Virus record (IMG/VR): IMGVR_UViG_3300027899_000001
Location: 341,017 to 405,016 of that record
DNA length: 64,000 bases
Direction: 5' to 3' (one strand)
This document shows, piece by piece, positions 20,794 to 45,611 of the stretch. Numbering within the stretch: position 1 is the stretch's first letter; every line of letters starts with the position of its first letter. The notes beneath the pieces were generated by a model. The model ran no database searches. It saw only the letters and a program-made list of their open reading frames with translations, and was not told the DNA's origin. The position numbers and the translations under genes were made by a program.

Positions 20794-21192
20794 TTATTTC
20801 ATTGTTATCTTATACGTGTGACTATCATCTAAAGAATACGGAGTTCCTCTTCTAGTATAAACACGAACTTCATAAATTCTATCAGACATATTTACACTAC
20901 TAAAGTCTAATTTTATTTTAACTACTTCTATAGAAATATTTTTAGCCCATTTATATGTGTTAAAATTAAAAAAATCACCCGTTATTATTTTTCCTAATAA
21001 TTTTTGTTTAAATAATTTGCGTAATTGAGCACGTCTTTTTTTAATTATAGTACTAATGTCTTTTTGTACATTTGTATAATATATTTCATTTTGATCTCTT
21101 AAAATAAAATTCTCTTTGTATCCTATACCCATATCTTTTACTGGATCGGAATCTTCAACAAATTTTTCATTTATATGTTCTTTAACTATCAT
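20794..21192 (-). CDS. EKF-SDP-MGIG leader family protein
   Basis: N-terminus MIVKEHINEKFVEDSDPVKDMGIG shared with five other ORFs. Confidence 0.8.
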   Translation of the reverse strand: MIVKEHINEKFVEDSDPVKDMGIGYKENFILRDQNEIYYTNVQKDISTIIKKRRAQLRKLFKQKLLGKIITGDFFNFNTYKWAKNISIEVVKIKLDFSSVNMSDRIYEVRVYTRRGTPYSLDDSHTYKITMK

Positions 21193-21195
21193 AAT

Positions 21196-21602
21196 TTAAA
21201 TCATTCTTAATGTATACATATTTTTGTAGTCTTCTAAAACAAAAGAATTTCCATCTTCATCATATACGCGAACTTCAGAAAGAGTATCACACCCATATCC
21301 ATCATGAAAACTTACTCTTATTCTAACTACATTTACAGTTTTATTTTTTAGTGGTCTATAATAATCTCCTTTTTTAACTAAAAAAGTTCCTGTCATTTCT
21401 TTACCAACTAGTTTTTCTTTTAATTCTTTACGTAAAGTTTTTCTATATTTTTCTACTATCTTTTGAAATTGTTGATATGTGTATGAACCATATTCTTTTT
21501 TTGTTTAGAAAAATCATATTCTTCCTTATGACCTATACCCATTTGACGAATAGGATCACCTTCTTCTTTAAACTTTTCAAATATATGTTCTTTAACTATC
21601 AT
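21196..21602 (-). pseudogene. EKF-SDP-MGIG leader family protein split by a -1 frame break at A_AAA_AAG (21495-21501)
   Basis: MIVKEHIFEKFKEEGDPIRQMGIG... frame ends at TAG; the -1 frame joins the 21196..21396 ORF and restores similarity to both paralogous neighbours. Confidence 0.75.
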
Positions 21603-21889
21603 GCGGGTATTCTCCAATGTGTTTTTAAAAATTCTTCTTCAGTATTAAAAGTTGTTATATCAATATTTTTTGTTATTATAAAATTATACCATAATTGTTC
21701 CCATTGATCAACATTTTGTAATTTTCCTGCTTTGTGTCTTTTCATTAGATCTTTTACATAATTCCAATTATTTATAATTTCTAAAACAGTTTCATTATGA
21801 ATTATATATTCAGGCACGGACTGTTGAGCTTGCATATTTTGTTGTCCTGGTCCAAAGAACGCTTGAAAAAAATGTGGTGGTTGTTGCAT
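21599..21889 (-). CDS. Hypothetical protein, Gln-rich N-terminus
   Basis: 96-aa ORF. Confidence 0.6.
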   Translation of the reverse strand: MQQPPHFFQAFFGPGQQNMQAQQSVPEYIIHNETVLEIINNWNYVKDLMKRHKAGKLQNVDQWEQLWYNFIITKNIDITTFNTEEEFLKTHWRIPA

Positions 21890-21896
21890 ATTTATT

Positions 21897-22289
21897 TTAT
21901 TTAGCTGTTATTACATATTCTTGTTCACCCCAACTAGAGGTATTCATATTATATTTTCTTCCTTTATTTGATGTTACTATTAATTCTCTTACATATCCAT
22001 AATCTAAATCTACTACAACTTCAACACTTTTTATTAATAATGATCTTGTCATTTCTTTATATTCTGTAAAAAAATCACCCGTCACAATTTTTCCAACAAA
22101 TTTTTCACTCAGTTCTTTTTGTAATGAACTTTCCATTATTTTTAAAAGTTTTCTTTTTTCTTTATTAAATTTTTTCGCGTGAGTTGTACATAACACTTCC
22201 ATATCAATTTTTTCTTTGTATCCTATACCCATATCGTGTATAGGATCAGATTGTTCCTGAAATTTTTCAAATATGAAGTGAGCTTTCAT
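21897..22289 (-). CDS. EKF-SDP-MGIG leader family protein
   Basis: MKAHFIFEKFQEQSDPIHDMGIG; body similar to 20794..21192 (GKI.TGDFF). Confidence 0.8.
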   Translation of the reverse strand: MKAHFIFEKFQEQSDPIHDMGIGYKEKIDMEVLCTTHAKKFNKEKRKLLKIMESSLQKELSEKFVGKIVTGDFFTEYKEMTRSLLIKSVEVVVDLDYGYVRELIVTSNKGRKYNMNTSSWGEQEYVITAK

Positions 22290-22294
22290 TTAGA

Positions 22295-23071
22295 TTATTT
22301 TATTTTGAATAATTTTCTAAATAATCCTCGTGATGCTTTATGAGCATCTGCTTTTGCTGATAGATTTTCAGGATTTGAATCAGCATCAATAGCAGTCCAA
22401 ACTTCCCACTGAAATCCCCATTCAGCAAAAGGAAAATAAGTATATCCTTGATCGCCCCATTCTGCTGTCCATGAATTTCTAATAATAAATTTATCTTTAA
22501 GATATCCAGCAACACAAACTGCATGTCCACCTAACATTTCTTGACCAGTAAAATCTGGTTTCCAAAAATCCATTTTATCTGAATTAAATACTGGAAATGC
22601 AATATAACAAGGTCCATTAGCAAATAAAGCTTTTTTAAGTGAATCTACTGTATTGATTTGAGCATATCCTTGAATTTTATATTTAGCTGCTTTAAATTTT
22701 AATTCTGGCGTAATAGCTTTAAATTGTCCATAAGGATAATCTTTTTCTGTAACAATTCCAATCTTATATAAAATATCCATTGTATCTCTTGGTGTCATTC
22801 CAGAAGATTCTTGATTTGATCTTAAATTATATACAAATTGAGGTGATAAATATTCTCTAAGTTCAACATCTGTTAATTCTTCCCATTCTTTAAGTGCTGC
22901 TGCAGTTTGTGCAGAGCATGTACCTTGCTGACCTTGATCTCTTACTGGTCTCATTTGAGGTCTCAAATCCCATATTTCTGGAAGAACTACTCTGTTAGGA
23001 TATATTGATTCTAACATAAAGTCCCTTTTATCTACGGGAGATTTTTCAAGATTAAATAAATACTTTTGCAT
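22295..23071 (-). CDS. Papain-like C1 family cysteine peptidase
   Basis: DQGQQGTCSA, LSPQFVY, GGHAV, IIRNSW...WGDQGY catalytic motifs. Confidence 0.92.
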   Translation of the reverse strand: MQKYLFNLEKSPVDKRDFMLESIYPNRVVLPEIWDLRPQMRPVRDQGQQGTCSAQTAAALKEWEELTDVELREYLSPQFVYNLRSNQESSGMTPRDTMDILYKIGIVTEKDYPYGQFKAITPELKFKAAKYKIQGYAQINTVDSLKKALFANGPCYIAFPVFNSDKMDFWKPDFTGQEMLGGHAVCVAGYLKDKFIIRNSWTAEWGDQGYTYFPFAEWGFQWEVWTAIDADSNPENLSAKADAHKASRGLFRKLFKIK

Positions 23072-23080
23072 ATTATTAAA

Positions 23081-23602
23081 TTATTTTAATTTATCTACTA
23101 CACTTTTTATTTTTTCTGCGCTTTTTATAATGTGATCTAATGTATCTAAAAAATATTGATTAACTGGAGTATACTTATTACGAAAATCTACTGATGATCT
23201 TTTGTCTCCTGGCATAATTTCTTTATCTTGCCATATATTATATACTGGTTCAAAATATATTTTTATTGTTCTATATGAATATGAACTTGGAATGCCTGCA
23301 CCTGTCACTCTATATAATGCCGTAATTATATCTGGAAATTTTACATCATCTTCATACCATAATTGATTAGCGCCTTGTTTTACACAAAATTTAATAAGAT
23401 TTATTCTTTCAAATGTATTTTCTGCATAATGAGTTACTCCGATTACTAATATATCATTATATGTTGATTGAGAAGTAATTTCTTCTCTAGAGTATTCCGG
23501 AAATTTTTTTAATATTTGAGCAAGTGGACCAATACCCATGTCTTTAATAGGATCTGATTCTTCAGAGAATTTTTCATTAAGATATTCACGTACACGGTCC
23601 AT
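23081..23602 (-). CDS. EKF-SDP-MGIG leader family protein
   Basis: MDRVREYLNEKFSEESDPIKDMGIG with unrelated body. Confidence 0.8.
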   Translation of the reverse strand: MDRVREYLNEKFSEESDPIKDMGIGPLAQILKKFPEYSREEITSQSTYNDILVIGVTHYAENTFERINLIKFCVKQGANQLWYEDDVKFPDIITALYRVTGAGIPSSYSYRTIKIYFEPVYNIWQDKEIMPGDKRSSVDFRNKYTPVNQYFLDTLDHIIKSAEKIKSVVDKLK

Positions 23603-23643
23603 GAAGAGATTTTTTATTATATATTCATAGTCCAGAACAGCAA

Positions 23644-23671
23644 AAAACCCTTAGAATCATCTAAGGGTTTT
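23644..23671. terminator. Intrinsic terminator
   Basis: aaaacccttaga-atca-tctaagggtttt. Confidence 0.8.
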
Positions 23672-23690
23672 ATTTTTGAGATAAGGAATA

Positions 23691-23768
23691 CTATTTCTTA
23701 TCAGGTTTTGGTGTCTCTGAATTGCTTGGAAGCATCTTAGTAAGATCTTCAGGCTTCATTCCAATGAA
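23691..23768 (-). pseudogene. Orphaned alternative 3' end of the flotillin gene
   Basis: Translates FIGMKPEDLTKMLPSNSETPKPDKK* versus flotillin end FIGVKPEDAIAMLKPKTEVDKK*. Confidence 0.75.
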
Positions 23769-23832
23769 TTAAAAAAATTTAATGCATTAAGTACCTCAAA
23801 AAATTAAATTTTCATTAATATATAAAATAAAG

Positions 23833-24537
23833 ATGAACTACCAAAAAATTTATGAATCTATAATTCAAAAAGCTAAATCTGAAAATAGAGTAAAACACAA
23901 AGAAGTATATTATGAAAATCATCATATTATGCCTAAATGTTTAGGTGGAAATAACGATATATCAAATTTAATTTTATTAACGGCAAAAGAACATTTTATA
24001 TGTCATAAATTATTAACATATATTTATCCAACGAATAGAAAAATAATATGTGCTTTACATATGATGACATATTCTTGTAATGAAAATTCTATTAAATCTT
24101 CAAGAGATTATAAATTTGTAAAAGAGCTTTTATCAGATAATAGTAAAGGAAAAAAACATCCTATGTTTGGAAAACATCATTCAGAAGATGCAATAAATAA
24201 AATGAAAAAACCACATAAAAAATATTCGAAAGATTATATGTTAAGCTTAAAAGAAATTCGTAAAGGAGAAAAAAATCCTATGTATGGCAAAAAACAAACT
24301 AAAGAATCAAATGAAAAAAATTCTCAATCTCATATAGGAAAAAAACATACAACAGAAAGTAAGAAAAAAATGTCTATAACTCGTATATCAAAACATTTTA
24401 AACATACAGAACAAACAAAAAAGAAACAAGGAGAATGGCAAAAAGGAAAAACATATATAGAACTATATGGAGAAGAAAAGGCATCACAAATGAAAGAAAA
24501 ACAAAGACTTGCTAAATTACAAAAAAATAGGAAGTAA
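23833..24537 (+). CDS. HNH homing endonuclease with NUMOD3 repeats
   Basis: ENHHIMPKCLGG.N...NLILLTAKEHFICHKLL; HPMFGKHHSE, NPMYGKKQT. Confidence 0.9.
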   Translation: MNYQKIYESIIQKAKSENRVKHKEVYYENHHIMPKCLGGNNDISNLILLTAKEHFICHKLLTYIYPTNRKIICALHMMTYSCNENSIKSSRDYKFVKELLSDNSKGKKHPMFGKHHSEDAINKMKKPHKKYSKDYMLSLKEIRKGEKNPMYGKKQTKESNEKNSQSHIGKKHTTESKKKMSITRISKHFKHTEQTKKKQGEWQKGKTYIELYGEEKASQMKEKQRLAKLQKNRK

Positions 24538-24566
24538 TTACTTCCTATTTTTAAATAAATTTAATT

Positions 24567-26126
24567 TTATTTTTTATCTACTTCTGTTTTTGGTTTAAGC
24601 ATAGCTATTGCGTCTTCTGGTTTTACTCCTATAAAATTTAATAAAGATGTCATATCGAAACCTGTTCCTTTTAAACCTTCAAACATTTTAGTAAGTACTT
24701 CTACTGGTATAGTTCCAAATTTTGATGTAGCAGAACCTCCTTCTTTTCCAGATCCAAAATCTACTATTTTAATATCTTTAACATTTCCGAGATGTGATGT
24801 ACTTGCTGCCATAACTCCTGCAAATTCTTTTATAACATTTGGTCCAAGAGTTTGAAGAGCTGACAAAACTTCTAAAAAACGGCCAGTTTGATCAAGTTTT
24901 GCATAAGCTTCAGCTTTTTCCAATGTACCTTTAGCTTCTGCAGAAAGTTTAGCATAAATTGCATTACCTTCAGCCTGTCCTTTTTTCGTAATAATAGCAG
25001 CTTCACCCTCAGCTTCTGCATTCTTTTTCAACACAATTGCCTTAGCTTCACCTTCTGCTTTAATACGCTGTGCTTCTCTTTGTCCTTCAGCTTCAAGAAT
25101 ATAAGCCTGTTTTGCCGCATCTGCATTAATGATTTTCTGTTGTTTTTGAGCTTCAGCTGGAACAATCATTTCAGCTTCATATTGTTTCTGAGTTTTAAGA
25201 GCTCTTTGTTCTTGAACAGCAATATTAGCCTTTTCTGCTGCAGCTTCTGTAGCTGCTCTTGCTTCTACTACATTTTTCATTGCCTGTGCTTGAGATAAAG
25301 GACCAGCCTGATTTGCAATTTCATTCTGTCTATCAGTTTCAGCCTTCATTTCAGCCTTCCTTACATTCATACTTCTATTAGCTTCTGCAATCTTCATTTC
25401 ATTCTGGTTTGCAGCTTCAACTGCTAGTCTATTAGCATCAGTTGTTTTGATTGTAGAATCTCTCAAAGCTTCTGCAGTACCAATTTCTGCGTCTCTCTTG
25501 ATTTCAGCAGTTCTTTTCTTACCAAGGTTAATAATATAACCATCTTTATCAGTTACATTCTGAATGTTAAGAGAATCTACAGTAATACCAAGTTTCTTAA
25601 AATCTTCTGATGCATCTTCAAGAACAGCCTGATTAAGTTTTTGCTTGTCACCGATTAATTCTTCAATAGTCATTTTACCTACTACAGAACGAAGGTGACC
25701 TTCAAGATTTTGAAAAATAATTTTATCAACTTCATCATCATCTTTTCCAAGGAATCTTTCAACTGCGATTTCCAATAGTGCTTTATCACTTGAGAATTTA
25801 GTATTAGCTACGCCTTCTACGGTTGTCATAACTCCGTTTTTATTAGGTGCATTATCCACCTTTATGTTAATTACTCGGTTAGACAAATCCATCATCTGTA
25901 CTTCTTCCAAAAAAGGAAGCTTAAATACACCGCCACCTGTGATAAGACGATATCCTTTCGTGCCACCGCCCGCGGCTTTATTTTTTCTACCATAAAGAAC
26001 AGCAGCTTTATTAGGAGCGATTCGAATATAGTTTTTTACTAGTATGGCTATTAATCCTACTAAAACTATAATGGAAACAAGCGTGATAGCTGCAACAACT
26101 AACATTGATTTTGCTTCTGGGTTCAT
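24567..26126 (-). CDS. Flotillin / SPFH (band 7) family protein
   Basis: N-terminal TM, SPFH domain (LEGHLRSVVGKMTIEE), AEA-rich coiled coil. Confidence 0.92.
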   Translation of the reverse strand: MNPEAKSMLVVAAITLVSIIVLVGLIAILVKNYIRIAPNKAAVLYGRKNKAAGGGTKGYRLITGGGVFKLPFLEEVQMMDLSNRVINIKVDNAPNKNGVMTTVEGVANTKFSSDKALLEIAVERFLGKDDDEVDKIIFQNLEGHLRSVVGKMTIEELIGDKQKLNQAVLEDASEDFKKLGITVDSLNIQNVTDKDGYIINLGKKRTAEIKRDAEIGTAEALRDSTIKTTDANRLAVEAANQNEMKIAEANRSMNVRKAEMKAETDRQNEIANQAGPLSQAQAMKNVVEARAATEAAAEKANIAVQEQRALKTQKQYEAEMIVPAEAQKQQKIINADAAKQAYILEAEGQREAQRIKAEGEAKAIVLKKNAEAEGEAAIITKKGQAEGNAIYAKLSAEAKGTLEKAEAYAKLDQTGRFLEVLSALQTLGPNVIKEFAGVMAASTSHLGNVKDIKIVDFGSGKEGGSATSKFGTIPVEVLTKMFEGLKGTGFDMTSLLNFIGVKPEDAIAMLKPKTEVDKK

Positions 26127-26158
26127 TTGTTTATTTGTATTTAGTTAATATAAGAAAT

Positions 26159-26683
26159 TTAGATTTTTTCAACGATAAGTAAACCTTCTTGTGCTTCAAT
26201 AACTTTAACAGTTTGGCTTTTTCTTAAAGGCTTGTCACTTTTATCTTTACATGTATAATATAAATTATCTACATAAATTTCACCAAGACCTTGATCGCCT
26301 GAAGCAATTGTTATAGTTCCTGATTTTCCTACAAGATTTTTTGCATCTTTCACTTCTCCTGCCTGTTGACTATAAAAGGCTTTAATTATTAGAAAAGCAA
26401 AAAACATCATTACAAATCCTATTAAAAATCCCAAGAATAGTTGTCCGCCTATACTCCAATTAAGAAGAGTTTTAGCACATATACCAGCTACTCCAAATCC
26501 TGCTAGAAAAGCAGAAATAGTACGAATAGAAAATAGACCAGGAGAATCTGTGTCTGTATCTGCATGTCCATCAAAATCGTGATGGAAATCAAAATGTGTA
26601 TCAAAATCGTGGTCTATGCCACCGAAGATTGCTAGAGAAAATACTACCAATCCTACAATAAGAAATACTAAATAAAGTGTCAT
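26159..26683 (-). CDS. NfeD-like flotillin partner (YuaF type)
   Basis: TM helices, His/Asp-rich loop, FLAGFG..G, C-terminal OB-fold LVGKSGTI...GEI...LIVEK. Confidence 0.85.
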   Translation of the reverse strand: MTLYLVFLIVGLVVFSLAIFGGIDHDFDTHFDFHHDFDGHADTDTDSPGLFSIRTISAFLAGFGVAGICAKTLLNWSIGGQLFLGFLIGFVMMFFAFLIIKAFYSQQAGEVKDAKNLVGKSGTITIASGDQGLGEIYVDNLYYTCKDKSDKPLRKSQTVKVIEAQEGLLIVEKI

Positions 26684-26772
26684 TTTTCGTTTGTTTTTAA
26701 TTATTAAATGTTATGTAAATATAAACATTATTCTTGATGTGAAATAATAGTTTTTGTTAATGTTATGTTAAT

Positions 26773-27372
26773 TTATTTAGTTATTTTTTCTTCAACTGTC
26801 ATTGATAACATATCTGCGCAATGTATAAGTCTTACTAATGGATGATCTATAGCTGTATTGTATGCGTAATTCTGAGGAGAATTTGCAAAGTTAACACTCA
26901 TTTCAGTAGCACCCATATGCCATCTTATTGCCATTGCTTCTGCATCTGTAAGTTTCATATATTTTGAAATTAAATGTACGCTTTTTTCTCCATGTCCATA
27001 CGGAAACTTATCTTCTACAACATAAGCAAGATATTTTTCCCATTTATCTTCTGTATTTTTTCTAAATTTTTCTTGTTGTTTATAATAATTTGTTTTACAA
27101 ACATCATGAAATAATGCAGAAATGATAACAGATTCTTTAAGATATTCTAAATCTGGTTTATTACTAATAATAAAATTAAAATTATGAAGTGCAAATTTAA
27201 GCACTAACATAGTATGGTCAAGTAAACCTCCTTCATAGTTTCCATGAAATTTTGTAGAAGCAGGAGCTGTATAAAAATCGGTATCTGTTTGTAACCAATT
27301 TAACAATTCAGTTATTCCCGGTCTTGTAATAAAGGATACTGCTTGATTAAATCCTTCTCTTGATGGTGTCAT
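26773..27372 (-). CDS. HD-domain phosphohydrolase
   Basis: FYTAPASTKFHG...GGLLDH, LFHDVCK, GHGEKSV, AIRWHMG, AD. Confidence 0.9.
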   Translation of the reverse strand: MTPSREGFNQAVSFITRPGITELLNWLQTDTDFYTAPASTKFHGNYEGGLLDHTMLVLKFALHNFNFIISNKPDLEYLKESVIISALFHDVCKTNYYKQQEKFRKNTEDKWEKYLAYVVEDKFPYGHGEKSVHLISKYMKLTDAEAMAIRWHMGATEMSVNFANSPQNYAYNTAIDHPLVRLIHCADMLSMTVEEKITK

Positions 27373-27374
27373 TT

Positions 27375-28046
27375 TTATTTTTGTTTAAATGTTATTAATA
27401 ATTCTTTGTTTTCTATTGAGAAATATGATAAAAGTTCTGTATTTGTTAAATTAAATGTTTCTTGATACATTTTTATATAAGATTGTTGATCTATTGTTTC
27501 TATGATGAATCTTAATTGTTGTTCATAATATAATGAAGTTGCATATCTGTCTCCATATATATTTTCAAATCCATTATCTTGAATTAAATTATCAACATTT
27601 TTCTTTACTAAATATTCGGTTCTTAATAATTGCAAGTAAGGTTCTATAGATTCATTTACATCATTATATGTGCATCTAACTTCTCCATTATCAAATGTGC
27701 CAACATTAAAAATAGATTTAGTATATAACGCCTTGCCCTTTGTTCCTAAATGCGATTCTGCGATTCCTTGTGCTAATACTAATCTAATATCTACTTTATA
27801 TTGTTCACATTTTCGAACTAAAAAATTTACATTAATTTTTGAATCGGGCGCTATATTATCAACCACTTTTTTAACTTCTGTAACTAAATGTTCATGTATC
27901 TGTTGTCTTACAAGTATAGGAAAAACCGTTTGATTTTTACTATAATTTTCTTGTGTGGTCATCGGCGATGAAAAAGTTTTATAATTCGGATTACCAACAT
28001 TTAAGAAAAAAAGTATTATAATTATTATTAAAGTTTTAAAAATCAT
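27375..28046 (-). CDS. Glucosaminidase/lysozyme-like cell wall hydrolase with N-terminal signal
   Basis: LVLAQGIAESHLGT, IFNVG, RYATSLYYE. Confidence 0.75.
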   Translation of the reverse strand: MIFKTLIIIIILFFLNVGNPNYKTFSSPMTTQENYSKNQTVFPILVRQQIHEHLVTEVKKVVDNIAPDSKINVNFLVRKCEQYKVDIRLVLAQGIAESHLGTKGKALYTKSIFNVGTFDNGEVRCTYNDVNESIEPYLQLLRTEYLVKKNVDNLIQDNGFENIYGDRYATSLYYEQQLRFIIETIDQQSYIKMYQETFNLTNTELLSYFSIENKELLITFKQK

Positions 28047-28068
28047 TCATTAAATTTATGTTTGTTTA

Positions 28069-28596
28069 TCACTCAGTAAAGAGTGATATACTTCCAACAT
28101 GATGCTCAAAGTCATCATCTTGAGAAGGTTTAATCGGAGTAATAACCATTACTTCCACATCATGTTCACCATATATTTCATTTATATATCTTTGTGACGT
28201 CGTTAATTTTCCATCTTCTTCAATATGTTTAAGTATCATATAGGCTTTATCTTTAATATGGCCATCAATTAATTTAAGTGCATTGAAAGATAACTCTTCT
28301 TCCTCTTCAACTATTCTAGCTATGCAATTAAGTAATCTGCTTTTTATTAAAATATATTTTCCATAAGGAAGTCCCAAAGAATAATTAAGAACATCTTTTG
28401 AAAAAACGCCACCCTTGCCTCTTCCCCAAGCTTTAAAAAATGTTCCAGTTACATGATCAGGAAGAACCACAGTATGATGGCCTTCAAATAAAGTAACAAT
28501 ATAATTATCTATAACATTTGGAGTAATTTGATCAATAGTAACATCAGTAATTACATCACTTACTTCTTCTCCTGTTTGTATTTTATCTTTCATCAT
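28069..28596 (-). CDS. Hypothetical protein
   Basis: 175-aa ORF. Confidence 0.65.
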   Translation of the reverse strand: MMKDKIQTGEEVSDVITDVTIDQITPNVIDNYIVTLFEGHHTVVLPDHVTGTFFKAWGRGKGGVFSKDVLNYSLGLPYGKYILIKSRLLNCIARIVEEEEELSFNALKLIDGHIKDKAYMILKHIEEDGKLTTSQRYINEIYGEHDVEVMVITPIKPSQDDDFEHHVGSISLFTE

Positions 28597-30087: not shown

Positions 30088-30106
30088 TTGTTTATGATTT
30101 TAATTA

Positions 30107-37056: not shown

Positions 37057-37860
37057 ATGAAAGATTTTAGAAAAACAGAAAATGGATTTTTTATTTGTGA
37101 AGAATGTGGGATAATAACTAAAAGAAAATCTGGGTTAAGTAAACATATTAATATTCATCATATTAATGTAAAAACATATTTTGATAAATGGATAAAAGAT
37201 ATCGATGATGATAAATGTAAAATATGTAAAAAAGAAACTAAATATCTTAACATAAAAACTGGATATAAAAATACTTGTTGTAAAAAATGCGAAAATTTAT
37301 ATAAACATAATAGAACAAAAGAAGAGTGTATTAAAAAATATGGAGTAGAACACCCTTTGCAAGATATATCTATAAATGAAAAACAAAAACAATCAATGAT
37401 AAATGTTTGGGGTGTAAGTAATCCTGGCCAATCAAATGAATTAAAATTAAAAAAGAAAAAAACTTTTGTATTAAGATATAAGTGTGAAAATCCTTTACAA
37501 ATTAAAACAATATTTTATAAAACTCAAATATCTGGATATAATTGTAAATTATTCAAAAATACTACTATTTATTATAGAGGCTCATATGAATTAGATTTTT
37601 TAGAAAAATATTATGACATATACCCCGATATTGAAAACGGTCCATCTATTAAATATAAAATCGGTGTAAAAAATAAAATATATTATCCGGACTTTTTTAT
37701 TCCGTCATTAAATCTTATAATTGAATGTAAAAATTCGTATTTAGCTAAAAAAGATAAAAAACTTATAAAGATTAAAGAAAATGCATGTATTGAAAACGGT
37801 TTTAATTATTGTATTATAATAAATAAACAATATGAAAATTTAAGATGGCTCAAGAATTAA
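37057..37860 (+). CDS. Free-standing endonuclease (zinc fingers, KYGV repeats, PD-(D/E)XK)
   Basis: CEEC..HINIHH; KKYGVEHPLQ; RGSYELDF, YYPDFFI...IIECKN. Confidence 0.85.
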   Translation: MKDFRKTENGFFICEECGIITKRKSGLSKHINIHHINVKTYFDKWIKDIDDDKCKICKKETKYLNIKTGYKNTCCKKCENLYKHNRTKEECIKKYGVEHPLQDISINEKQKQSMINVWGVSNPGQSNELKLKKKKTFVLRYKCENPLQIKTIFYKTQISGYNCKLFKNTTIYYRGSYELDFLEKYYDIYPDIENGPSIKYKIGVKNKIYYPDFFIPSLNLIIECKNSYLAKKDKKLIKIKENACIENGFNYCIIINKQYENLRWLKN

Positions 37861-38541
37861 TCCTATTCCTGAAATATTTTTTATATTTAATTTTATTTTA
37901 TTTTCTTTAAATGTCTTTCGTAAATAAGATAAATAAACATCACAAGATCTACCAGCAAAATAATCATTTGGTTTTCTCCAAACTTTTTCAAGTATAACTT
38001 CTTTTCTTACAACTTGTCCGTAATTTATTGCTAATACTTCAAGTATACTACCTTCTTTAGGAGAAAGCTCTTTAACTTCTTTTCCGTTATAAGAAAGAAT
38101 TCTACGAGTTGGATCATAAACACATTTTGCAAATTCAATTTTATCATGCATTTTAACTGTAAGTTTCTGAAGAACTTCAAATGTTTTTGTGTATGAAAGA
38201 ATATTATGTACAACTGATTTGACAAATACATTATATGCAGCATCTCCTTCAAATTTCATGGGTTCATTCACATAAATATCAGCAGGAACAGTAAAAGTTA
38301 ATTCATTTACAATAATTCCTATGATAGGAGTATATGGCGTACTTTTTTTAATAAAACCTACAGCCTTTTTGAAAAATAGAGTATCGTTTGATAAAATATA
38401 AGCTTCTGCACTGCCTTGCTCAATTTGTTCAAATAAAACATGTTCCATTTTTGCCCCAATTATTTCGTGGCCAGATTCTTTTGCGAATCTTATAAACATA
38501 TTTAACAAATCAGTGTTTTCTGTATTCACTACAATTTTCAT
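37840..38541 (-). CDS. OmpR/PhoB-family winged-helix regulator (RprY-like) with degenerate receiver domain
   Basis: LSPKEGSIL..L...G.VV.KE.IL.KVW...DYFAGRSCDVYLSYLRK...KNISGIG; N-terminal domain appears to lack the canonical acidic pocket. Confidence 0.85.
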   Translation of the reverse strand: MKIVVNTENTDLLNMFIRFAKESGHEIIGAKMEHVLFEQIEQGSAEAYILSNDTLFFKKAVGFIKKSTPYTPIIGIIVNELTFTVPADIYVNEPMKFEGDAAYNVFVKSVVHNILSYTKTFEVLQKLTVKMHDKIEFAKCVYDPTRRILSYNGKEVKELSPKEGSILEVLAINYGQVVRKEVILEKVWRKPNDYFAGRSCDVYLSYLRKTFKENKIKLNIKNISGIGLILEPS

Positions 38542-38601
38542 ATGTATTTTGTTAATTTATAATGCAAATATAAACAAAATCTTTGAATTAAAAAAATATT
38601 T

Positions 38602-38641
38602 GTTAAAAATTAATTAAGATTTAATGTTAATGTTTTGTTAA
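38602..38641. promoter_or_regulatory. Double GTTAA-N6-GTTAA direct-repeat box upstream of the regulator gene; representative of 11 sites
   Basis: (G/A)TTAA half-sites at 38602/38613 and 38626/38637, 11-bp period. Confidence 0.6.
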
Positions 38642-38853
38642 TGTTCTTTTATGTAATGAGAAATTACACTTACAAGTGCATCAGATTCTTCTTGAGTAAA
38701 TTCTCCATTTTTTACGGCTTCTGTCATTCTTTTTTTCACATCTCTAAGATATAAAAAATCGCTTAATTTTTCAAATATGAATATTAATATACATAATCCG
38801 GTAATAGACATTGTGATAATAAATAAAATGTTATTCATTGTTATAATATTAAA

Positions 38854-39636
38854 TTAAAATCCTAAGTGTTTTCTACGAACATATTCAAGATCATATGAAG
38901 TTGTTGTTAATGGAAATTCTGGATTATTAAAAGGATAATGCCATGGCCACATAGTCCTCCAATGTACTCCCCATTTTTTAGTAAGATATTCAAAATTTAT
39001 AATATTTACTTCATTTATTCTATTCCATAAAGCTTCATCACATCTTTTCGTTTGAGCTCCTGTTTTATAATAATCTGTTCCTCCGCCATGATAATATACA
39101 TGATCAAGCCCCATTACTCTTTTTATTGGATTATGTTTAAGTCTCATTATATAATCAGCATCTTCTCCATATGCAGGATATAAATTTTCATCAAATAATC
39201 CATATTTTTGAACGACCCAATCTTTTATAAGAAAAAGTTCCCAAGATCCAACTTCAGGAAAATCTCCAGGAGAACTATGAACTATACCTACTTCAGGATC
39301 ACTTGCTTTTTCCATCATTTCATCTAAAAATCCCGGTGTAAATTCAATATCATGATTACAAATTATCCAATAAGGAGCATTCATAAAACATTTTATTATT
39401 AAATTCCATGCGCCAGAACATCCTACATTTGCGGGCATATGCGTAACAATTATATTTTTAATATAAGGATGTGGAATTTTTGCAATATTATCAAGTTCTT
39501 CAATTAATTGACCACGACCGTTATTATCAAATATTACTAGTGTATCAGTAGGATAATCAACACTATCGATTAATTTTTGTATCCAATGTGGTCCATTAAC
39601 TATGGCAGTTCCTATTACAGGAATAGATGTATTCAT
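38854..39636 (-). CDS. Glycosyltransferase family 2
   Basis: IFDNNG, NVGCSGAWN, ICNHDI, GLFDENLYPAYGEDADY. Confidence 0.88.
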   Translation of the reverse strand: MNTSIPVIGTAIVNGPHWIQKLIDSVDYPTDTLVIFDNNGRGQLIEELDNIAKIPHPYIKNIIVTHMPANVGCSGAWNLIIKCFMNAPYWIICNHDIEFTPGFLDEMMEKASDPEVGIVHSSPGDFPEVGSWELFLIKDWVVQKYGLFDENLYPAYGEDADYIMRLKHNPIKRVMGLDHVYYHGGGTDYYKTGAQTKRCDEALWNRINEVNIINFEYLTKKWGVHWRTMWPWHYPFNNPEFPLTTTSYDLEYVRRKHLGF

Positions 39637-39647
39637 AAATTAATTTA

Positions 39648-40421
39648 TTAAAAACCTAAATATTTTTGTCTCATAAAATAAATGTCAAATGAATATGTAG
39701 TTAATTGCATTCTTGGATCATTGAAAGGTGTTTGATATGGATTAGTTTCCCAGTCATATCCCCATTTTCTATCAATGTAATTAAGATTTAGACTATTTAC
39801 ATATTTTAATTTTTCTGATAAAGAAGGATCACTTTTTTTAGTATTTTCGCCTGTTTTATAATAATCAGTGCTTAATCCGTGATAATAAGGCTTACTTAAT
39901 TTATATATAGCTTTTAATGGATATATTTTTAATCTTATAGCATAATCTAAATCTTCACAATAAGCAGGATACAAATTTTCATCAAATAAGCCTCTATATT
40001 GAATACTCCAATCTCTGATTAAAAATAAGTCATAACTTCCATCTCCAGTATCACCCGGTTTTCCAAAAATTATACCTACATCTAAATGTTTATTTGCGGT
40101 TTCTACCATTTCTTCTAAAAGTCCTGATGAAAATGATATATCATGATTACAAAAAATCCAGTAAGGAGCATTCATATAACATTTTATAGTTAAATTCCAT
40201 GATGCTGCTAAACCTATATTAGCAGGCATATGTGTTACTGTAATTTTTTTAATAAACTTATGAGTCATTTTTTTCATATTATCTAACTCTTCGTCTATTT
40301 CTCCTCTGCCATTGTTATTAATAATGACAAGATTATCTACTGGATAATCTATGCTTGCAATTAAACGATATAACCAATATGGATCATTAACTATTGCAGT
40401 GCTTATTACTGGTATTGACAT
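39648..40421 (-). CDS. Glycosyltransferase family 2, tandem paralog
   Basis: Same motifs as 38854..39636 with high similarity. Confidence 0.88.
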   Translation of the reverse strand: MSIPVISTAIVNDPYWLYRLIASIDYPVDNLVIINNNGRGEIDEELDNMKKMTHKFIKKITVTHMPANIGLAASWNLTIKCYMNAPYWIFCNHDISFSSGLLEEMVETANKHLDVGIIFGKPGDTGDGSYDLFLIRDWSIQYRGLFDENLYPAYCEDLDYAIRLKIYPLKAIYKLSKPYYHGLSTDYYKTGENTKKSDPSLSEKLKYVNSLNLNYIDRKWGYDWETNPYQTPFNDPRMQLTTYSFDIYFMRQKYLGF

Positions 40422-40468
40422 AATTAAAAAAATTAGTGAATTATAATATATATAATCACTAAAAAATA

Positions 40469-40514
40469 GAAGTTTCCGGCGGGGTAGGTCTATATCATGT
40501 ATGCCGGAAACTTC
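40469..40514 (-). terminator. Strong hairpin, probable terminator
   Basis: gaagtttccggc...gccggaaacttc 12-bp stem, 22-nt loop, followed by UAUUUUUU on the minus strand. Confidence 0.55.
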
Positions 40515-40975
40515 TGAAAAATATTATATTACTTTGAAAAGAAAAAGAGAAAAAGATAATAAACAAATTCCTAATAAAGTTAGATAACCTATTCGTATAG
40601 GTCTTTTGAAATCTGCCCACTCTTTTGATAACTTTTTCATTACAATATAATAGCTTATGCCTACTATTGTTAAGAGTACTACTAAATTTAGTAATTGAGG
40701 CAAAATGCTTCTTAAAAAGTCCATAATTTTAATTATTAAAGTTAGCGAATTTTACGAATAAGAATGTGTTTAGAAAGAACCATATATACGTTACAAGATT
40801 CAGTGATGTTGTAAACATGAAGTTCATTTTTAACTTTATCAATTCCTTTAATTTGTACAAGGTCATTAGCGTGAGTAATATAAACTCCGTCTTTTTTCAA
40901 TTCGTCTACTGGAAGAGATGGGTCTTTAAGTATTGGTTTCATATTGTAAATATTAAATTAAAACTTCAAATTATT

Positions 40976-41059
40976 TGCTCCAATATATAGATTCGAACTA
41001 TAAGCCTTTTCAGGTTCCTGGCCTCTATTTGGGCTCTCATCCAAATGAGTAAAGGAGTA
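40976..41059 (-). ncRNA. Degenerate tRNA-like element
   Basis: D arm CUCA-UUUGGA-UGAG, T arm UAUAG-UUCGAAU-CUAUA, partial acceptor stem, no canonical anticodon loop; has an upstream promoter motif. Confidence 0.5.
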
Positions 41060-41390
41060 TATTTTTAATTTTAAAGAACTGTTGTATTAATTATAGTGTA
41101 AATATAATACAAATATTTGATACAAAAAAATATTTTTCCATTTATTTTAACAAAATCTTAATTATTTTTCTACAGCCATTAAAAGTTCAAGATCTTTAAA
41201 AACTGCTTCTACTATTTTTATTTTATCTTTATAAGCTGAAATATGAGCATCCATTACAGTTGTTAAATAATCTGCGCCTGTTTGTTTTTTAAGTTTTTCT
41301 ATTTCAGCAATAGCATTTTCATATACAGTTATTAAACTTGTATATTTCTCAATGATTCTTTCGTACTCTTCTTTTTGTGTCATGATATTT

Positions 41391-42152
41391 TTATTTTAAT
41401 CGATTAAAAAATAATTCTGGTTTAAGTATTTCTTCTACAGTTGGAGGTTTATTATGAGCTAATATTTGTATTCCTTTTTTGAGCCCATATTTATCTAAAA
41501 AATCTCGTAAAAAATAATAAGAATAAACATATTTATTATTCACTTCATTATTTTTATCTAATAAATCTTCTATAGTTTGAGGAATTTGAATTTTATCTAA
41601 TGGTGAACATTCCTTTAAATGATACACAACATATTCGCACGTACCTTCTTCTATAAAATCTGCACTAAATTGAGAATTATAGGTTGAAACTGTTCTTAAT
41701 ATTTGATATTCTGGAGAAACTGATAAACTATCATTTTTCATCAGTATTGTTAGCTGATGAAAATATACGTGTGTTAATTCATGAAATACAACTGCTTTAA
41801 CACTTCTTTCTCTATATGAAGTTAGCATTTTTCGAAATTTAGATAAATCTTTATATTCATAACAAAGATATTTTTCTCTATTGGTTATAGCTATATCATT
41901 AGGAGGATAAAATTCGCCTAAATTATCTTCAGGAGAATCACCCAAGTCATCGGTATAAAGATTAACATCATATAATGTATCTATTTTATATTCATATTCT
42001 TTAATAAGACTTTCATTATTATCTTCAATATATTTTGTTATTCCATATCTTGAAGGTGCATGAAGATTATTATACATAATATCCTTTTGAAAAGGAGATA
42101 TCATAATAAGCCATAAAATAAAAATACCTACAAGATTATTGATACTATTCAT
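41391..42152 (-). CDS. Putative secreted zinc metallopeptidase
   Basis: N-terminal hydrophobic segment; VFHELTH and FIEEG gluzincin-like motifs. Confidence 0.7.
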   Translation of the reverse strand: MNSINNLVGIFILWLIMISPFQKDIMYNNLHAPSRYGITKYIEDNNESLIKEYEYKIDTLYDVNLYTDDLGDSPEDNLGEFYPPNDIAITNREKYLCYEYKDLSKFRKMLTSYRERSVKAVVFHELTHVYFHQLTILMKNDSLSVSPEYQILRTVSTYNSQFSADFIEEGTCEYVVYHLKECSPLDKIQIPQTIEDLLDKNNEVNNKYVYSYYFLRDFLDKYGLKKGIQILAHNKPPTVEEILKPELFFNRLK

Positions 42153-42469
42153 ATATATTTTTTACAAATATAAACCAAATTCTTGAATAAAAAAAATATT
42201 TTTATATTTATTTTAGTAACTATACCATTTTAATATACGTGTCGCGCGAGGGTTTTTATGATTCAGTCTAGAGTATCTGCATTCCTAGAGGGCTTTAGTC
42301 TTCAGTTATATGCAGTCAGTGAAAATAGTTTCGCACCAAAATTAATGTTCTGTTAAAAATAATTTAAAAATAAATGCATAAATATTTTTTTATTACATTA
42401 ATATTGTTTATATTTGTTCTCAACATAAATATATAAAGTAATGAATGCAATACTAAACAAATAAACAAG

Positions 42470-42991
42470 ATGGAAGTAATTAACAAATTAATATTCAAAA
42501 AGGCTTCAGGGGAAGTCGTTGATAATGTAGAAAAATATGTTAAGGATTGGACTAAAGAAAATCCTTATGGAAAAATTATTGTTGGATGTGATAGTCAAGT
42601 ACATGGACGCAGAATCAAATATTCAATAATTATTTGTATGCATTTTATTGACAGAATGCAGGTTGGTCACGGATGTCACTTATTAATATGTGATATTTGG
42701 GAAAAACGAATGAATAAATCTCAAGTTGATGAAATGCCATCTAAACTTTGGAAAGAAGCTGAATTTGCATTACAGACTGCAGAATTGGTAAATGGAACAG
42801 ATGAATACTTCAAAAATCATATAGAAGTTCATTTGGATTTTAATTCAATTGCTGAATCTAATTCACATCAAAATCTATCCAATAGAATGTATGCATCTGG
42901 TATAGGATTGCTAAGTGGATATGGATATAAGGTTTTTGGAAAGCCTTTCGCAAAAATTTCCTCAAACTGTGCAGACCATTTCTGCAGATAA
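42470..42991 (+). CDS. RNase H-like YkuK (DUF458) family protein
   Basis: IIVGCDSQ, KLWKEAE, IEVHLDFN, KPFA..S..ADH. Confidence 0.85.
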   Translation: MEVINKLIFKKASGEVVDNVEKYVKDWTKENPYGKIIVGCDSQVHGRRIKYSIIICMHFIDRMQVGHGCHLLICDIWEKRMNKSQVDEMPSKLWKEAEFALQTAELVNGTDEYFKNHIEVHLDFNSIAESNSHQNLSNRMYASGIGLLSGYGYKVFGKPFAKISSNCADHFCR

Positions 42992-43058
42992 TTCAAAAGC
43001 CCGTATTTCTCGGGCCTTTTTTAATTTTAATATAGATGAATAAATATAATAAAAGGCC

Positions 43059-43397
43059 ATGAAAAAACTTCTTATTATTTTATTATTATCTTTAAGTTTA
43101 ATATCTTGCAGTAAATATTATACAATGGTTATCTATGATAGAACGTATCCTGCGGCAGATTCTGAAATAGCATATGCAGATTTATATCAACATTTGAAAT
43201 CATATAATATGGAATCTATTCCACTTGATAAATGGATTTATAATGACATGCAACATGATACTATTCATATTACTCAAAAAATGGCAGCAAAAGAAATAGG
43301 TAAAAAAGATAATGTATTATTTGTATTTACAGAATTTAAGTATCCAAAATCTTCATATTATAAATTTGTTATAAGATATACAGGAAAAAAGTACTAA
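43059..43397 (+). CDS. Putative lipoprotein
   Basis: MKKLLIILLLSLSLISC lipobox. Confidence 0.7.
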   Translation: MKKLLIILLLSLSLISCSKYYTMVIYDRTYPAADSEIAYADLYQHLKSYNMESIPLDKWIYNDMQHDTIHITQKMAAKEIGKKDNVLFVFTEFKYPKSSYYKFVIRYTGKKY

Positions 43398-43437
43398 ATT
43401 ATTTTTTTATATCAAGTATTTTGTTTATATTTGTATA

Positions 43438-43902
43438 ATGAAAATCTTAATCACAGGAAGAAGAAATTTTAATAAAATGATGGAATACAATGGTATCACT
43501 GATGCTAATGTAGAACAACATGATGATACTATGTTTATTTCAATCGTAAGTCCCGTAGAACCAGATTTATCTAAAAAAGATAATTCAGATTCCTATTTCA
43601 AAGAATGCCATTCAAATGTAAAAGTAATGTCTTTTGGAGATTATATGGATAGTGAAGCTAAAAGCAATCCTAATGTATTCACAAAAGAACAGGCTAAGGA
43701 ACTTTATGAGTTTATTATTAAAAATAAAGATAAGAAAATGGCCATTTTGCACTGTGGCGCTGGAATTTCAAGAAGTGGAGCAATCGGCACTTTCTTATTT
43801 GAAAATTTTGGTGATGGCAATTACGAAGAATTCAAAAGAAAAAATCCTCAAATTTGTCCTAATCCAAGAGTTCTTAGATTACTTAATGAATGTAAGAAAT
43901 GA
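43438..43902 (+). CDS. Cys-based (tyrosine/dual-specificity) phosphatase
   Basis: HCGAGISRS (CX5R), PNPRV. Confidence 0.88.
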   Translation: MKILITGRRNFNKMMEYNGITDANVEQHDDTMFISIVSPVEPDLSKKDNSDSYFKECHSNVKVMSFGDYMDSEAKSNPNVFTKEQAKELYEFIIKNKDKKMAILHCGAGISRSGAIGTFLFENFGDGNYEEFKRKNPQICPNPRVLRLLNECKK

Positions 43903-44654
43903 TATTAACAGAAGATCAATTACTGATGTTAAATAAATGTGTAGCTCAGGGGCCTATAGATAAGGCCTCTGTAGTTATATTTGGCAATGAGTTTGGAACT
44001 GCTGGTGGAGAAGGTGATACTGAAAGATGTGTTAATAGATTTATGCATGAATTTGCCACAAGAAAATTATTACAAATAGGTGAAGGATTTTCAACAATAG
44101 AAATAGACTCGCCACCTGTAAACTCAACTTTTCTTCAGTTCATTTCAAGATTTATGTTAGCACGTAAATATAAAGATGAAAGATTTTTCGGTGAGTTGTC
44201 AGAAGAAGGAAAAGTAGTTCTTAATAAGTATATAATGTATGACCTTTATAGAAAAGATAGTGCTATAATAAATCTCAGACCACTACCGCGTCACACAGAA
44301 AGGCATTGGGACTACTCTAATATAGATGAAAAGGAATATAATAGGCAATACAATTTTAGCCTTAAGAAGCCTTTGAATGACAAGTATAAAGAGATAAGAT
44401 TGACAGCTATGAAAGAAGCTTTTCAATTAGCCAAGAATGCTTTGATATTAGGATCAGGCGATAAAGATAATAAAAAGAAATTTTTTGAAACGATATATCC
44501 TGATATTAAATTTGAAGAATACATATTACTTGGAAATGTAAAGATATACGTATCAGAATTTCCTAAAATAATTCTTTCAAATTACTATGATCATAGAAGT
44601 GGTGTAGGATTAAATGGATTGAAAGAAATCTATAGATTTGTTAATACCCTTTAG
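43899..44654 (+). CDS. Hypothetical protein (possible UDG-like fold)
   Basis: 251 aa; G.....VIFGNEFG and NLRPLP pattern. Confidence 0.6.
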   Translation: MILTEDQLLMLNKCVAQGPIDKASVVIFGNEFGTAGGEGDTERCVNRFMHEFATRKLLQIGEGFSTIEIDSPPVNSTFLQFISRFMLARKYKDERFFGELSEEGKVVLNKYIMYDLYRKDSAIINLRPLPRHTERHWDYSNIDEKEYNRQYNFSLKKPLNDKYKEIRLTAMKEAFQLAKNALILGSGDKDNKKKFFETIYPDIKFEEYILLGNVKIYVSEFPKIILSNYYDHRSGVGLNGLKEIYRFVNTL

Positions 44655-45177
44655 GTCTAGTATGAATATCACTTATACAATCGCAAACATCTAAAATATC
44701 GTCTCTTGTAAATTCACCAGGATTTTGTGCGCAATAAATTACTCCACTAAGACTGACATGACCTGGCATCTTTTTTCTTGGAGGATGTACTATTTCTGGA
44801 AAATATTTTAATGATGATATTTTATTGTCTTGAAAAGAAAAATATCCATATATTTCTCTTGGACATCCTTTTAATGATGTCATATCATTACCCATTATAT
44901 TAAATTCACCATCTATCACTCCAAATTTTATATAATAGGGGAAATTTCCTAAATGCTGATTACGTAAATCTACACTACCATATACATCTATAGTTCCATC
45001 TATATTGAATGTATATTGATTTTCTGTGAAACCGTGTCTTTCAAAAAATGCAGTATTTTTACCTATGTATTTATCTAACCATCTTTTTTGAATAGTTTTT
45101 AATCCAATTCCTAAATCATGAATTGGATCGCTTTCTTCTGAAAACCTTTCAGTAATATATTCTCGTACTAATTTCAA
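44641..45177 (-). CDS. EKF-SDP-MGIG leader family protein with LRR-like body
   Basis: TTG start overlapping the upstream TGA; KLVREYITERFSEESDPIHDLGIG; MTSLKGCP and ISSLKYFP repeats. Confidence 0.75.
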   Translation of the reverse strand: MKLVREYITERFSEESDPIHDLGIGLKTIQKRWLDKYIGKNTAFFERHGFTENQYTFNIDGTIDVYGSVDLRNQHLGNFPYYIKFGVIDGEFNIMGNDMTSLKGCPREIYGYFSFQDNKISSLKYFPEIVHPPRKKMPGHVSLSGVIYCAQNPGEFTRDDILDVCDCISDIHTRPKGY

Positions 45178-45611
45178 GTTTTTTCTATAATTTTGAAGTA
45201 TTCTGCCCAAGTAGAATACTTTTCGTCGCTATATAATATCGCTAATCCTAAATAATTTTTTTCTAAATTATAGCCTTTTTTTATTTCTTTTTTACAATAA
45301 TTAAAAAACTCATTATCTCCAAAAAATGCTATATATAATTCTAGTGATTTAGAATGTTTTTTACTTTTAACAACTACTCCTTTTATATCTTCTTTTGCCC
45401 ACGGAAGGAAATTTTTTCCAAGAGTATCAGATGGTGAAAAATACATTTTTTTAAGATTTGAGGGTGTATCTGCATTATAAAAATCTTTTTTAACTTTTAT
45501 TGTATCTCCCCTTTTAATATTGCCGAATCCCATCGTTCCTATACCCATATCAGCAATAGGGTCGCTTTCTTCTGTAAATTTCTCGTTAATATTTTCTCGT
45601 ACTATGCGCAT
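45174..45611 (-). CDS. EKF-SDP-MGIG leader family protein
   Basis: MRIVRENINEKFTEESDPIADMGIG. Confidence 0.8.
   Translation of the reverse strand: MRIVRENINEKFTEESDPIADMGIGTMGFGNIKRGDTIKVKKDFYNADTPSNLKKMYFSPSDTLGKNFLPWAKEDIKGVVVKSKKHSKSLELYIAFFGDNEFFNYCKKEIKKGYNLEKNYLGLAILYSDEKYSTWAEYFKIIEKT

Follow-up and report, generated by a model that had tools for sequence, protein, structure and literature searches.

A portable peptide tag on the modular proteins of a freshwater jumbo phage, possibly an extended T4-like capsid-targeting and cleavage signal

Why would six phage genes whose products have largely unlike bodies begin with one and the same peptide? The question is raised by the final 64 kb (positions 341,017–405,016) of the 405,016-bp IMG/VR record IMGVR_UViG_3300027899_000001, a phage genome that has direct terminal repeats and is rated complete. 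This whole 64,000-nucleotide stretch is called the window, and coordinates refer to it unless they are given as genome positions. In T4, internal proteins carry a short N-terminal capsid-targeting sequence (CTS) that the prohead protease cuts after (I/L)-x-E, and a preliminary description, made from the letters of the window, had proposed that the shared peptide is a signal of this kind marking virion-delivered effectors. A survey of the complete genome and its relatives suggests that the tag may be a capsid-targeting and cleavage signal of T4 type in extended form, doubling as the cut point of cargo polyproteins, a reading by analogy to which we assign a probability of about 0.5.

The tag itself is confirmed as real and far beyond chance. 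The six open reading frames (ORFs) start where they had been placed, at 21192, 21602, 22289, 23602, 45177 and 45611, all on the minus strand, and their first 24–25 residues are 54–68% identical to the tag of the first ORF, nearly without gaps. A hidden Markov model (HMM) built from the six tags and scored in the genome finds each window copy with an E value of 2e-19 to 1.5e-17. Behind this one tag the bodies are unlike, and as a set the six ORFs cannot be aligned beyond it. When 345 module bodies are clustered by BLAST and by jackhmmer in three rounds, the five testable window ORFs fall into four separate clusters; the second ORF, whose frame-0 body is too short for clustering, groups with the first and third through its −1 frame, which upholds the three paralogous bodies seen earlier. 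Restriction of the tag to six proteins and to N termini did not survive the genome-wide HMM census that the preliminary description had proposed as a check: there are 88 copies in 64 ORFs, and at least 25 of them lie inside ORFs. None of the six tagged proteins has a match above threshold in Pfam or PHROGs.

Most of the 64 ORFs (49) carry a single copy, while ten carry two, three carry three, and one each carries four and six. Together the tagged genes form 28 clusters that occupy 41.5 kb, or 10.3% of the genome; 58 of them are on the minus strand, and 20 of 36 neighboring pairs overlap or abut. Related IMG/VR contigs add 66 loci with 264 further copies, some of these loci being fragments of the same phage rather than independent relatives (IMG/VR UViG_3300003860_000003, _000004, _000007 and _000014, from the same sample and with matches identical to the genome; loci L050, L051, L056, L058, L066, L071, L074, L077, L079, L089, L101 and L107–L109). 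A HMMER scan of 1.84 billion cluster representatives found 1,687 tagged proteins at E ≤ 0.001, 703 of them at E ≤ 1e-10, and the maximum per protein rises from six tags in the genome to ten in one 1,203-residue protein among these representatives. The clade extends to 1,687 tag-bearing protein clusters and more than 2,000 related capsid-protein clusters. Ten tagged clusters that were looked up are metagenomic only and are unnamed, "hypothetical" or, in one case, "ankyrin repeat protein." In 185,579 species-representative bacterial and archaeal genomes there were 126 pattern matches, none of which was confirmed, and tblastn against 50,697 GenBank phages gave no match. No Pfam or PHROG family covering the tag was found, literature searches with its motif strings returned unrelated matches only, and the ESM Atlas offered no usable look-alikes. 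The tag is an undescribed, widespread and metagenome-only sequence family.

Aligned on G-I-G, every copy, N-terminal or internal, keeps the block (V/I/L)-N-E-K-F-x-E-(E/D)-S-D-P-(I/V)-x-D-(M/L)-G-I-G. The block opens with V/I/L-x-E in all 25 internal copies and in 46 of the 48 aligned N-terminal ones, and x is Asn in 50 of these 73. N-terminal copies have a leader in front of the block, and this leader comes in two main types: M-K-(I/L)-V-R-E-(H/Y), found in 32 genes, with the Glu of Φ-N-E at residue 10, and M-(K/R)-A-(Q/H)-(Y/F), found in 18 genes, with that Glu at residue 8. In six more of the 61 N-terminal copies, it is residue 9. Internal copies sit between tandem modules of ~110–130 residues, and the alignment shows no conservation upstream of them. 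In two proteins of the genome and one of a relative, the N-terminal domain is untagged, and an internal tag with its module comes behind it.

What the tag is attached to varies widely. The genome's modules include 16 that are LRR-like (leucine-rich repeat), 9 of the 88 with ankyrin repeats (Pfam, above threshold) and 11 in another family, the remainder being mostly orphans; jackhmmer resolves the 345 module bodies into 62 clusters. None of the six tagged genes of the window has an ankyrin body, and among the nonredundant tagged ORFs of relatives ankyrin occurs in 24 of 123. The bodies tend to be basic, 73% having an isoelectric point above 8. AlphaFold2 models were run with family alignments for two tagged proteins, called genes 1 and 5 after their order in the window. 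Gene 5 (44641–45177) is modeled as a beta-solenoid with a predicted local distance difference test (pLDDT) score of 91–98 and a tag at ~52; in gene 1 (20794–21192), a 35-residue helix and a beta sandwich exceed 90, and the tag (residues 1–30) has 47–59. In both models the tag has a single helical turn at D-P-x-x and no other structure. As modeled, the tag hangs flexibly from at least two architectures that are unrelated to each other, and neither model has a Foldseek match in the PDB at E ≤ 0.001.

The head proteins of the phage fit the T4 analogy. Its large terminase (TerL) is of the T4/Lak type, with 35% identity to Lak megaphages; it encodes a contractile sheath, collagen-like fibers, a portal and a head-maturation protease (PHROG head maturation protease, E = 6e-40), and a gp23-family major capsid protein (MCP; PF07068, 102 bits). 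Because of this gene content, the phage is classed as a T4-superfamily jumbo myophage. The protease is of the S77 (gp21) type (PF03420, 61 bits), and its domain (genome 308.3–309.0 kb) stands at the head of a 781-residue protein with a long scaffold-like tail (residues ~240–781). This tail holds 10 [LIV]NE sites where 1.3 are expected (p = 1e-6), the strongest enrichment in the proteome; second in rank is a 181-residue helical protein with five sites, whose gene (genome 157.4–158.0 kb) lies beside tagged genes. The protease itself starts with M-A-E-K-S-L-L-I-L-E, which can be likened to T4 gp21, where L-I-E occurs at residue 9 (PMC9026906).

The capsid protein carries the same motif at its predicted maturation site, H-A-L-N-E|A-A-M-G-G, whose counterpart in T4 gp23 is L-T-E|A-E-I-G-G. 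Cleavage of T4 gp23 after that Glu is established; the MCP and scaffold-tail sites of the phage are predicted rather than mapped. A search for MCP N termini in five tag-bearing IMG/VR records yielded one truncated MCP only; in a protein search, 110 of the 120 closest MCPs of the clade have a Φ-x-E|x-x-(M/L)-G-G site and 103 of these read L-N-E. Given the enrichment in the protease tail, the MCP site and the start of the protease, the gp21-type cleavage motif of this clade is very likely (L/I/V)-N-E, the same as the start of the tag block.

The leader has a T4 counterpart too. IPII and IPIII of T4 start MKTYQEFIAE|A (cut after E10, as read from the T4 record), and the phage leader M-K-(I/L)-V-R-E-(H/Y)-I-N-E matches them at M1, K2, E6, I8 and E10, or 5 of 10 positions. 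In the T4 10-mer, residues 4 and 7 serve targeting and residues 8 and 10 serve processing (PMC9026906); the phage leader conserves V4, H/Y7, I8 and E10 at these positions. The bodies behind the T-even leader show the same kind of diversity, as the internal proteins have only the CTS in common (PMC3012670), and they are likewise basic (PMC9026906).

Gene order points to the head as well. Tagged genes directly precede the protease–MCP block (genome 309.7–310.9 kb), the portal gene (genome 60.5–62.2 kb) has others 0.9 kb downstream of it, and in relatives tagged genes stay beside the portal and the [LIV]NE-rich protein. A two-module protein is encoded at genome 309.7–310.5 kb. The first tagged cluster of the window is just upstream of a cluster of tRNA genes (14 in the window, 10.5–20.1 kb) with an HNH gene beside it, and in T4 it is ipI that lies just upstream of the tRNA cluster and of genes for homing endonucleases. 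A promoter-like motif, GAATATATAAA(A)TAAA, stands ~10 nt upstream of 14 tagged genes, a spacing that implies very short leaders in the transcripts. The same motif precedes the portal gene, o1775 and genes of structural type with large products (1341 and 1751 residues), and close variants precede the MCP and fiber genes. It occurs before ORFs at ~20 times the chance expectation and has ~120 copies genome-wide, often behind a GC-rich stem-loop; one copy is upstream of the HNH gene at 23833 (+). As a separate observation, the motif resembles the T4 late promoter TATAAATA.

Taken together, these likenesses suggest a working model in which we infer packaging, cleavage, ejection and effector function for the tagged proteins. 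They would be made late, and the tag would draw modules, singly or in strings, into the core of the assembling prohead. There the S77 (gp21-type) protease would cut after each invariant (L/I/V)-N-E, so that N-terminal copies would lose an 8–10-residue leader, as T4 IPII and IPIII lose MKTYQEFIAE. Multimodule proteins would be cargo polyproteins, with cuts at internal tags giving separate modules of ~110–130 residues, and each freed module would keep the acidic 15-mer K-F-x-E-E-S-D-P-I-x-D-M-G-I-G at its new N terminus. The mostly basic modules, with ankyrin, LRR-like and orphan folds, would ride with the DNA in the head and enter the host on injection, forming a large and rapidly evolving set of binders or effectors. 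If fused and separate arrangements yield the same cut products, their interconversion is what one would expect. By analogy with T4, the tagged set is probably a very large group of head-packed, host-injected proteins.

A number of observations weigh against this reading. The strongest conservation, that of the 15-mer, lies past the proposed cut and would be retained by the mature protein, a point on which the T4 paradigm is silent, and internal copies keep the whole block even though they need no address. The residue after the proposed cut (P1') is Lys, compared with Ala at the T4 sites that were read (IPI–III and gp23). The likeness to the T4 CTS covers 10 residues, which is too short to prove homology, and head cargo amounting to 10% of the genome and 88 modules would be of unprecedented scale. 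There is no depletion of [LIV]NE inside the bodies (8 against 10–14 expected in the genome, and 31 against 32.7 in 276 modules), and hence no sign of selection against internal cutting. The promoter-like motif is not specific to structural genes, standing also before genes for HNH, zinc-finger and ATPase proteins, and so does not mark the tagged genes as late. No RNA run among the public runs contains the locus; the sole public run that holds the phage sequence is a freshwater DNA metagenome, probably its source. A single-sequence search for a homologue of T4 gp55, the late sigma factor, came up empty, which is uninformative by itself. A predicted complex of the protease domain (residues 1–235) with the tag (residues 1–45) scored 0.00 and is no evidence either way. 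Lastly, a gene for an untagged papain-family (C1) cysteine peptidase (22295–23071, minus strand; PF00112, E = 4e-20) lies between tagged genes, and such a gene adjoins tagged genes also in two relatives (L057 and L062).

Some of these same observations invite an explanation unrelated to the capsid, in which the tag is a short linear motif by which variable binder modules are all tied to one and the same partner inside the infected cell, such as a host or phage protease, polymerase or membrane complex, with multitag proteins acting as multivalent adaptors. F-box or PRANC motifs, which link ankyrin proteins of poxviruses to a ubiquitin ligase, would be the parallel. A block of 18 residues in which four hydrophobic anchors are spaced along an acidic background exceeds what a protease site needs, the tag is predicted to be disordered by itself, and the recognizable bodies are classic protein-binding repeats; retention of the full block in internal copies and of the cleavage motif in bodies at undiminished frequency fit this docking role equally. 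What it leaves unexplained are the invariant (L/I/V)-x-E, the T4-CTS-like leader with Glu10, the match to the MCP and scaffold motif and the neighborhood of portal, protease and core-like genes, and no candidate hub was identified. We regard docking to a hub as possible but rather unlikely; if the tag does act in this way, phages would have their first example of an F-box-like adaptor system. The C1 peptidase suggests a different cleavage of the tag, such as one after G-I-G that has Ile at P2, which would free modules in the cytoplasm. Its Cys, His and Asn catalytic motifs are present, its position is kept in two diverged relatives, G-I-G is invariant, and papain-type enzymes favor a hydrophobic P2. 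The idea is nonetheless improbable: one peptidase gene faces 28 tagged clusters and adjoins only one of them, N-terminal tags would become 25-residue propeptides with no evident purpose, and the T4-like leader and the MCP/scaffold motif match would go unaccounted for.

The tag could also be an uncleaved structural element, a linker or cap at the N terminus of fast-diverging small domains that aids folding, solubility or oligomerization and leaves tandem proteins as intact beads. Regular module sizes of ~110–130 residues agree with this, as does conservation right after the tag in some families (I-x-x-W-L in the LRR-like one). A purely structural piece would hardly stay so conserved across unrelated folds, though, and here at least three unrelated architectures occur among the bodies, which fall into the 62 jackhmmer clusters, with the tag unpacked on either modeled fold; this explanation, too, is improbable. 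Least probable by far is a DNA-level element, a repeat of 54–75 nt acting as a recombination site or regulatory sequence with the peptide as a by-product. Module breakpoints of relatives do lie in or right after the tag, and arrays and fusions interconvert, with many neighboring genes overlapping or abutting. Against it, every copy is in frame on the coding strand, and at conserved degenerate residues, pairs of tags use identical codons in 65% of cases against 60% expected from codon bias, so that nucleotides are not conserved beyond the amino acids. Because synonymous sites are near random, selection acts on the tag peptide and not on the DNA. A repeat or regulatory element at the DNA level was rejected, tag codon usage matching that of the genome.

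With these alternatives in mind, the putative capsid-targeting and cleavage signal can be set beside known systems. The closest are the CTSs of T4 and the T-even phages (IPI, IPII, IPIII and Alt), cut by the prohead protease gp21, which resemble the tag in being short leaders on unrelated, mostly basic small proteins, in the form M-K-x-x-x-E-x-I-x-E with Glu10 and the cut motif (L/I)-x-E, and in the company of a protease of the gp21 family and an MCP of the gp23 family whose maturation site (here predicted) has the same motif. A further likeness is that, like ipI, the genes have a tRNA cluster and genes for homing endonucleases as neighbors (PMC3012670, PMC9026906). The phage differs in having 88 copies in 64 genes against about 4–6 in T4, a roughly 20-fold expansion; in an extra 15-residue block past the cut that is conserved more strongly; in copies inside proteins between tandem modules; and in Lys at P1'. 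As judged from sequence, the tag would work like the T4 CTS in all testable features except one, namely that its conserved part extends beyond the propeptide that would be removed. The T4 analogy of the preliminary description is partly supported: protease, motif and leader fit it, and the 15 most conserved residues past the putative cut and the many internal copies were not anticipated by it. Because the strongest conservation lies past that cut and in internal copies, the tag is better viewed as a variant of the CTS than as a plain member.

Other systems share single traits. The propeptides of phiKZ, 201phi2-1 and SPN3US, cut after S/A/G-x-E by gp175 or gp245, also come from jumbo phages with many internal or ejection proteins, paralogous families, redundant cleavage sites and a gp21-related protease (PMC5694885, PMC9026906). 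They are long (up to >100 residues), have no single portable consensus and use a different motif, whereas this tag is one sharply conserved 18–25-mer and its phage falls on the T4/Lak side by TerL, unlike the phiKZ type. The ankyrin and LRR adaptors of poxviruses and giant viruses (PRANC/F-box, BTB) likewise join a constant short motif to a variable binder repeat and show massive lineage-specific expansion in clustered arrays. The likeness is a functional analogy only: their box is C-terminal and folded and binds Skp1, in contrast to a phage tag that is N-terminal or intermodule, disordered and acidic. Finally, the promoter–stem-loop (PeSL) cassettes of hyperplastic regions in T4-like phages (PMC4122927) resemble the stem-loop and promoter-like motif that flank many tagged genes and the variation of module content between close relatives; PeSL junctions are non-coding, and the phage has one more junction at the breakpoints, the tag, which is coding.

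How such a junction operates can be seen in three relatives that share an identical ankyrin first module followed by three different second modules, with divergence beginning in or right after the tag. Because relatives' modules diverge at this point, the tag is also the junction for module exchange. One relative has DUF6267 fused to tags, a domain that was not detectable in this phage genome. In another IMG/VR relative, a 2H-phosphoesterase (Acb1/LigT-like) is joined by an internal tag to a module of the gene 1 family (L075:4668–5351, plus strand); it matches 2_5_RNA_ligase2 at E = 2e-12 and the Acb1 anti-CBASS model at E = 3e-5, below the cut-off of that model. In T4, Acb1 (gene 57B) adjoins ipI. 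The anti-defense role suggested earlier for the tagged proteins finds backing in this one fusion and in the T4 analogy; the recognizable bodies are mostly binder folds, ankyrin and LRR-like. A 634-residue protein at genome 167.7–169.6 kb (L040:5662–7563, minus strand) starts M-K-F-S-S-Y-I-S-W-L-N-E-N-I-N-E, which is leader-like but without the 15-mer. It continues with an H-x-G-H nucleotidyltransferase-like N-terminal domain, an internal tag and a ~400-residue body that has a G-S-x(n)-D-I-D-L polymerase-beta-type motif and no Pfam match.

The six tagged genes of the window, all on the minus strand, lie in two groups. Gene 1 encodes 132 residues, with the tag core (I-N-E to G-I-G) at 21121–21174 and the helix and small beta sandwich of its AlphaFold2 model behind it. 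Its paralogue gene 3 (21897–22289; 130 residues; tag core 22221–22274) has the short leader M-K-A-H-F-I-F-E. Between them lies gene 2 (21196–21602; tag core 21531–21584), a paralogue of both that is interrupted by a −1 frameshift. Its frame-0 product ends after 48 residues (53 counting from an upstream TTG) at TAG TAG, and the remainder is in the −1 frame (66 codons, 21196–21396), which restores a full 135-residue paralogue. The shift site is CAA AAA AAG at 21495–21503 (minus strand), that is, a zero-frame A AAA AAG heptamer, the classic dnaX-type −1 slippery site. Another IMG/VR contig of that sample shows the identical sequence. Programmed frameshifting, a genuine mutation in the run of A residues and an assembly error could each account for the break. 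Gene 4 (23081–23602; 173 residues; tag core 23528–23581) lies on the other side of the C1 peptidase gene and has a body with only three relatives among the 345 modules. The promoter-like motif ATATATAATAAA, a variant of GAATATATAAA(A)TAAA and a putative promoter, stands 10 nt upstream of it (23613–23624, minus strand).

Genes 5 and 6 form the second group. Gene 5 encodes 178 residues from a TTG start at 45177, with its tag core at 45103–45156, and belongs to the largest body family, which by BLAST has 16 modules in the genome. The LRR-like character ascribed to it earlier agrees with the solenoid model and with Foldseek, where the best matches are all LRR proteins; these matches are weak (E = 0.16 or worse, template modeling score 0.4 or lower), and Pfam finds no LRR in the body. 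Gene 6 (45174–45611; 145 residues; tag core 45537–45590) has an orphan body, and its stop overlaps the start of gene 5 in TTGA, the TTG of gene 5 overlapping the upstream TGA. A promoter-like variant, GAATAAATAAAATAAA, lies 7 nt upstream of gene 6 (45619–45634, minus strand), and the same variant occurs before fiber genes.

Other features of the window and genome deserve mention in their own right. The GC content is 26–33% over most of the window. The tRNA cluster includes a tRNA with anticodon CTA (amber suppressor; "Pyl" in ARAGORN) at 12910–12983 (minus strand); TAG ends 27 of ~330 long ORFs, and no tagged ORF requires read-through. Near-identical HNH homing-endonuclease genes, with the N terminus M-N-x-x-K-I-Y-x-x-I-I-x-K-A-K, are scattered at 23833–24537 (plus strand) and at genome 36.6 and 238.7 kb, one of them adjoining a tagged cluster. 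At 19240–19905 (minus strand) and at least eight further genome sites (for example, 109.2, 113.5, 118.4, 267.9, 327.4, 330.1 and 334.8 kb), there is a second expanded family of ~220–340-residue proteins with zinc-finger-like N termini (C-x2-C...H-x3-5-H), each behind the same promoter-like motif. A 519-residue flotillin/SPFH (Band 7) protein followed by an NfeD-like membrane protein is encoded at 24567–26683 (minus strand), a bacterial-type membrane-scaffold operon on a phage. Very large fiber-like genes lie at 45674–49561, 50382–57254 and 58835–64000 (all plus strand; 1,295, 2,290 and >1,722 residues) and have long collagen-like G-T-Q or G-I-Q tracts; the collagen-like fiber genes run on through the terminal repeat, with four more at the start of the genome. 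A capsid protein of the clade on a 199-kb NCBI contig (P0227, 75% identical) is deposited under a "Candidatus Nanoarchaeia archaeon" metagenome-assembled genome, most likely because a phage sequence was misbinned there.

Should the tag prove to be a capsid-targeting and cleavage signal, a widespread freshwater jumbo-phage clade would be devoting roughly a tenth of its genome to proteins that are packaged in the head, injected and addressed by a single peptide. The T4 internal-protein paradigm would widen from a few anti-restriction proteins to a modular, shuffling arsenal made mainly of protein-binding repeats, and polyprotein processing would take place inside a phage head. The tag would also offer a short natural address, complete with a defined cut site, by which foreign proteins could be loaded into large capsids. 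It gives a one-line sequence rule for recognizing candidate virion cargo in metagenomes, which makes the injected set of jumbo phages testable. A bolder version, which we consider doubtful, sees the tag as a reusable, two-part address plus cut mark: strings of binders would be loaded into the prohead as polyproteins and chopped into dozens of cargo proteins, and the retained acidic 15-mer would be a second signal acting after injection, such as a docking or exit peptide. If this were true, the phage would deliver a library of ankyrin, LRR-like and orphan binders against host proteins by way of a natural portable packaging tag, a scale and logic of virion-borne effector delivery that would be undescribed for any phage.

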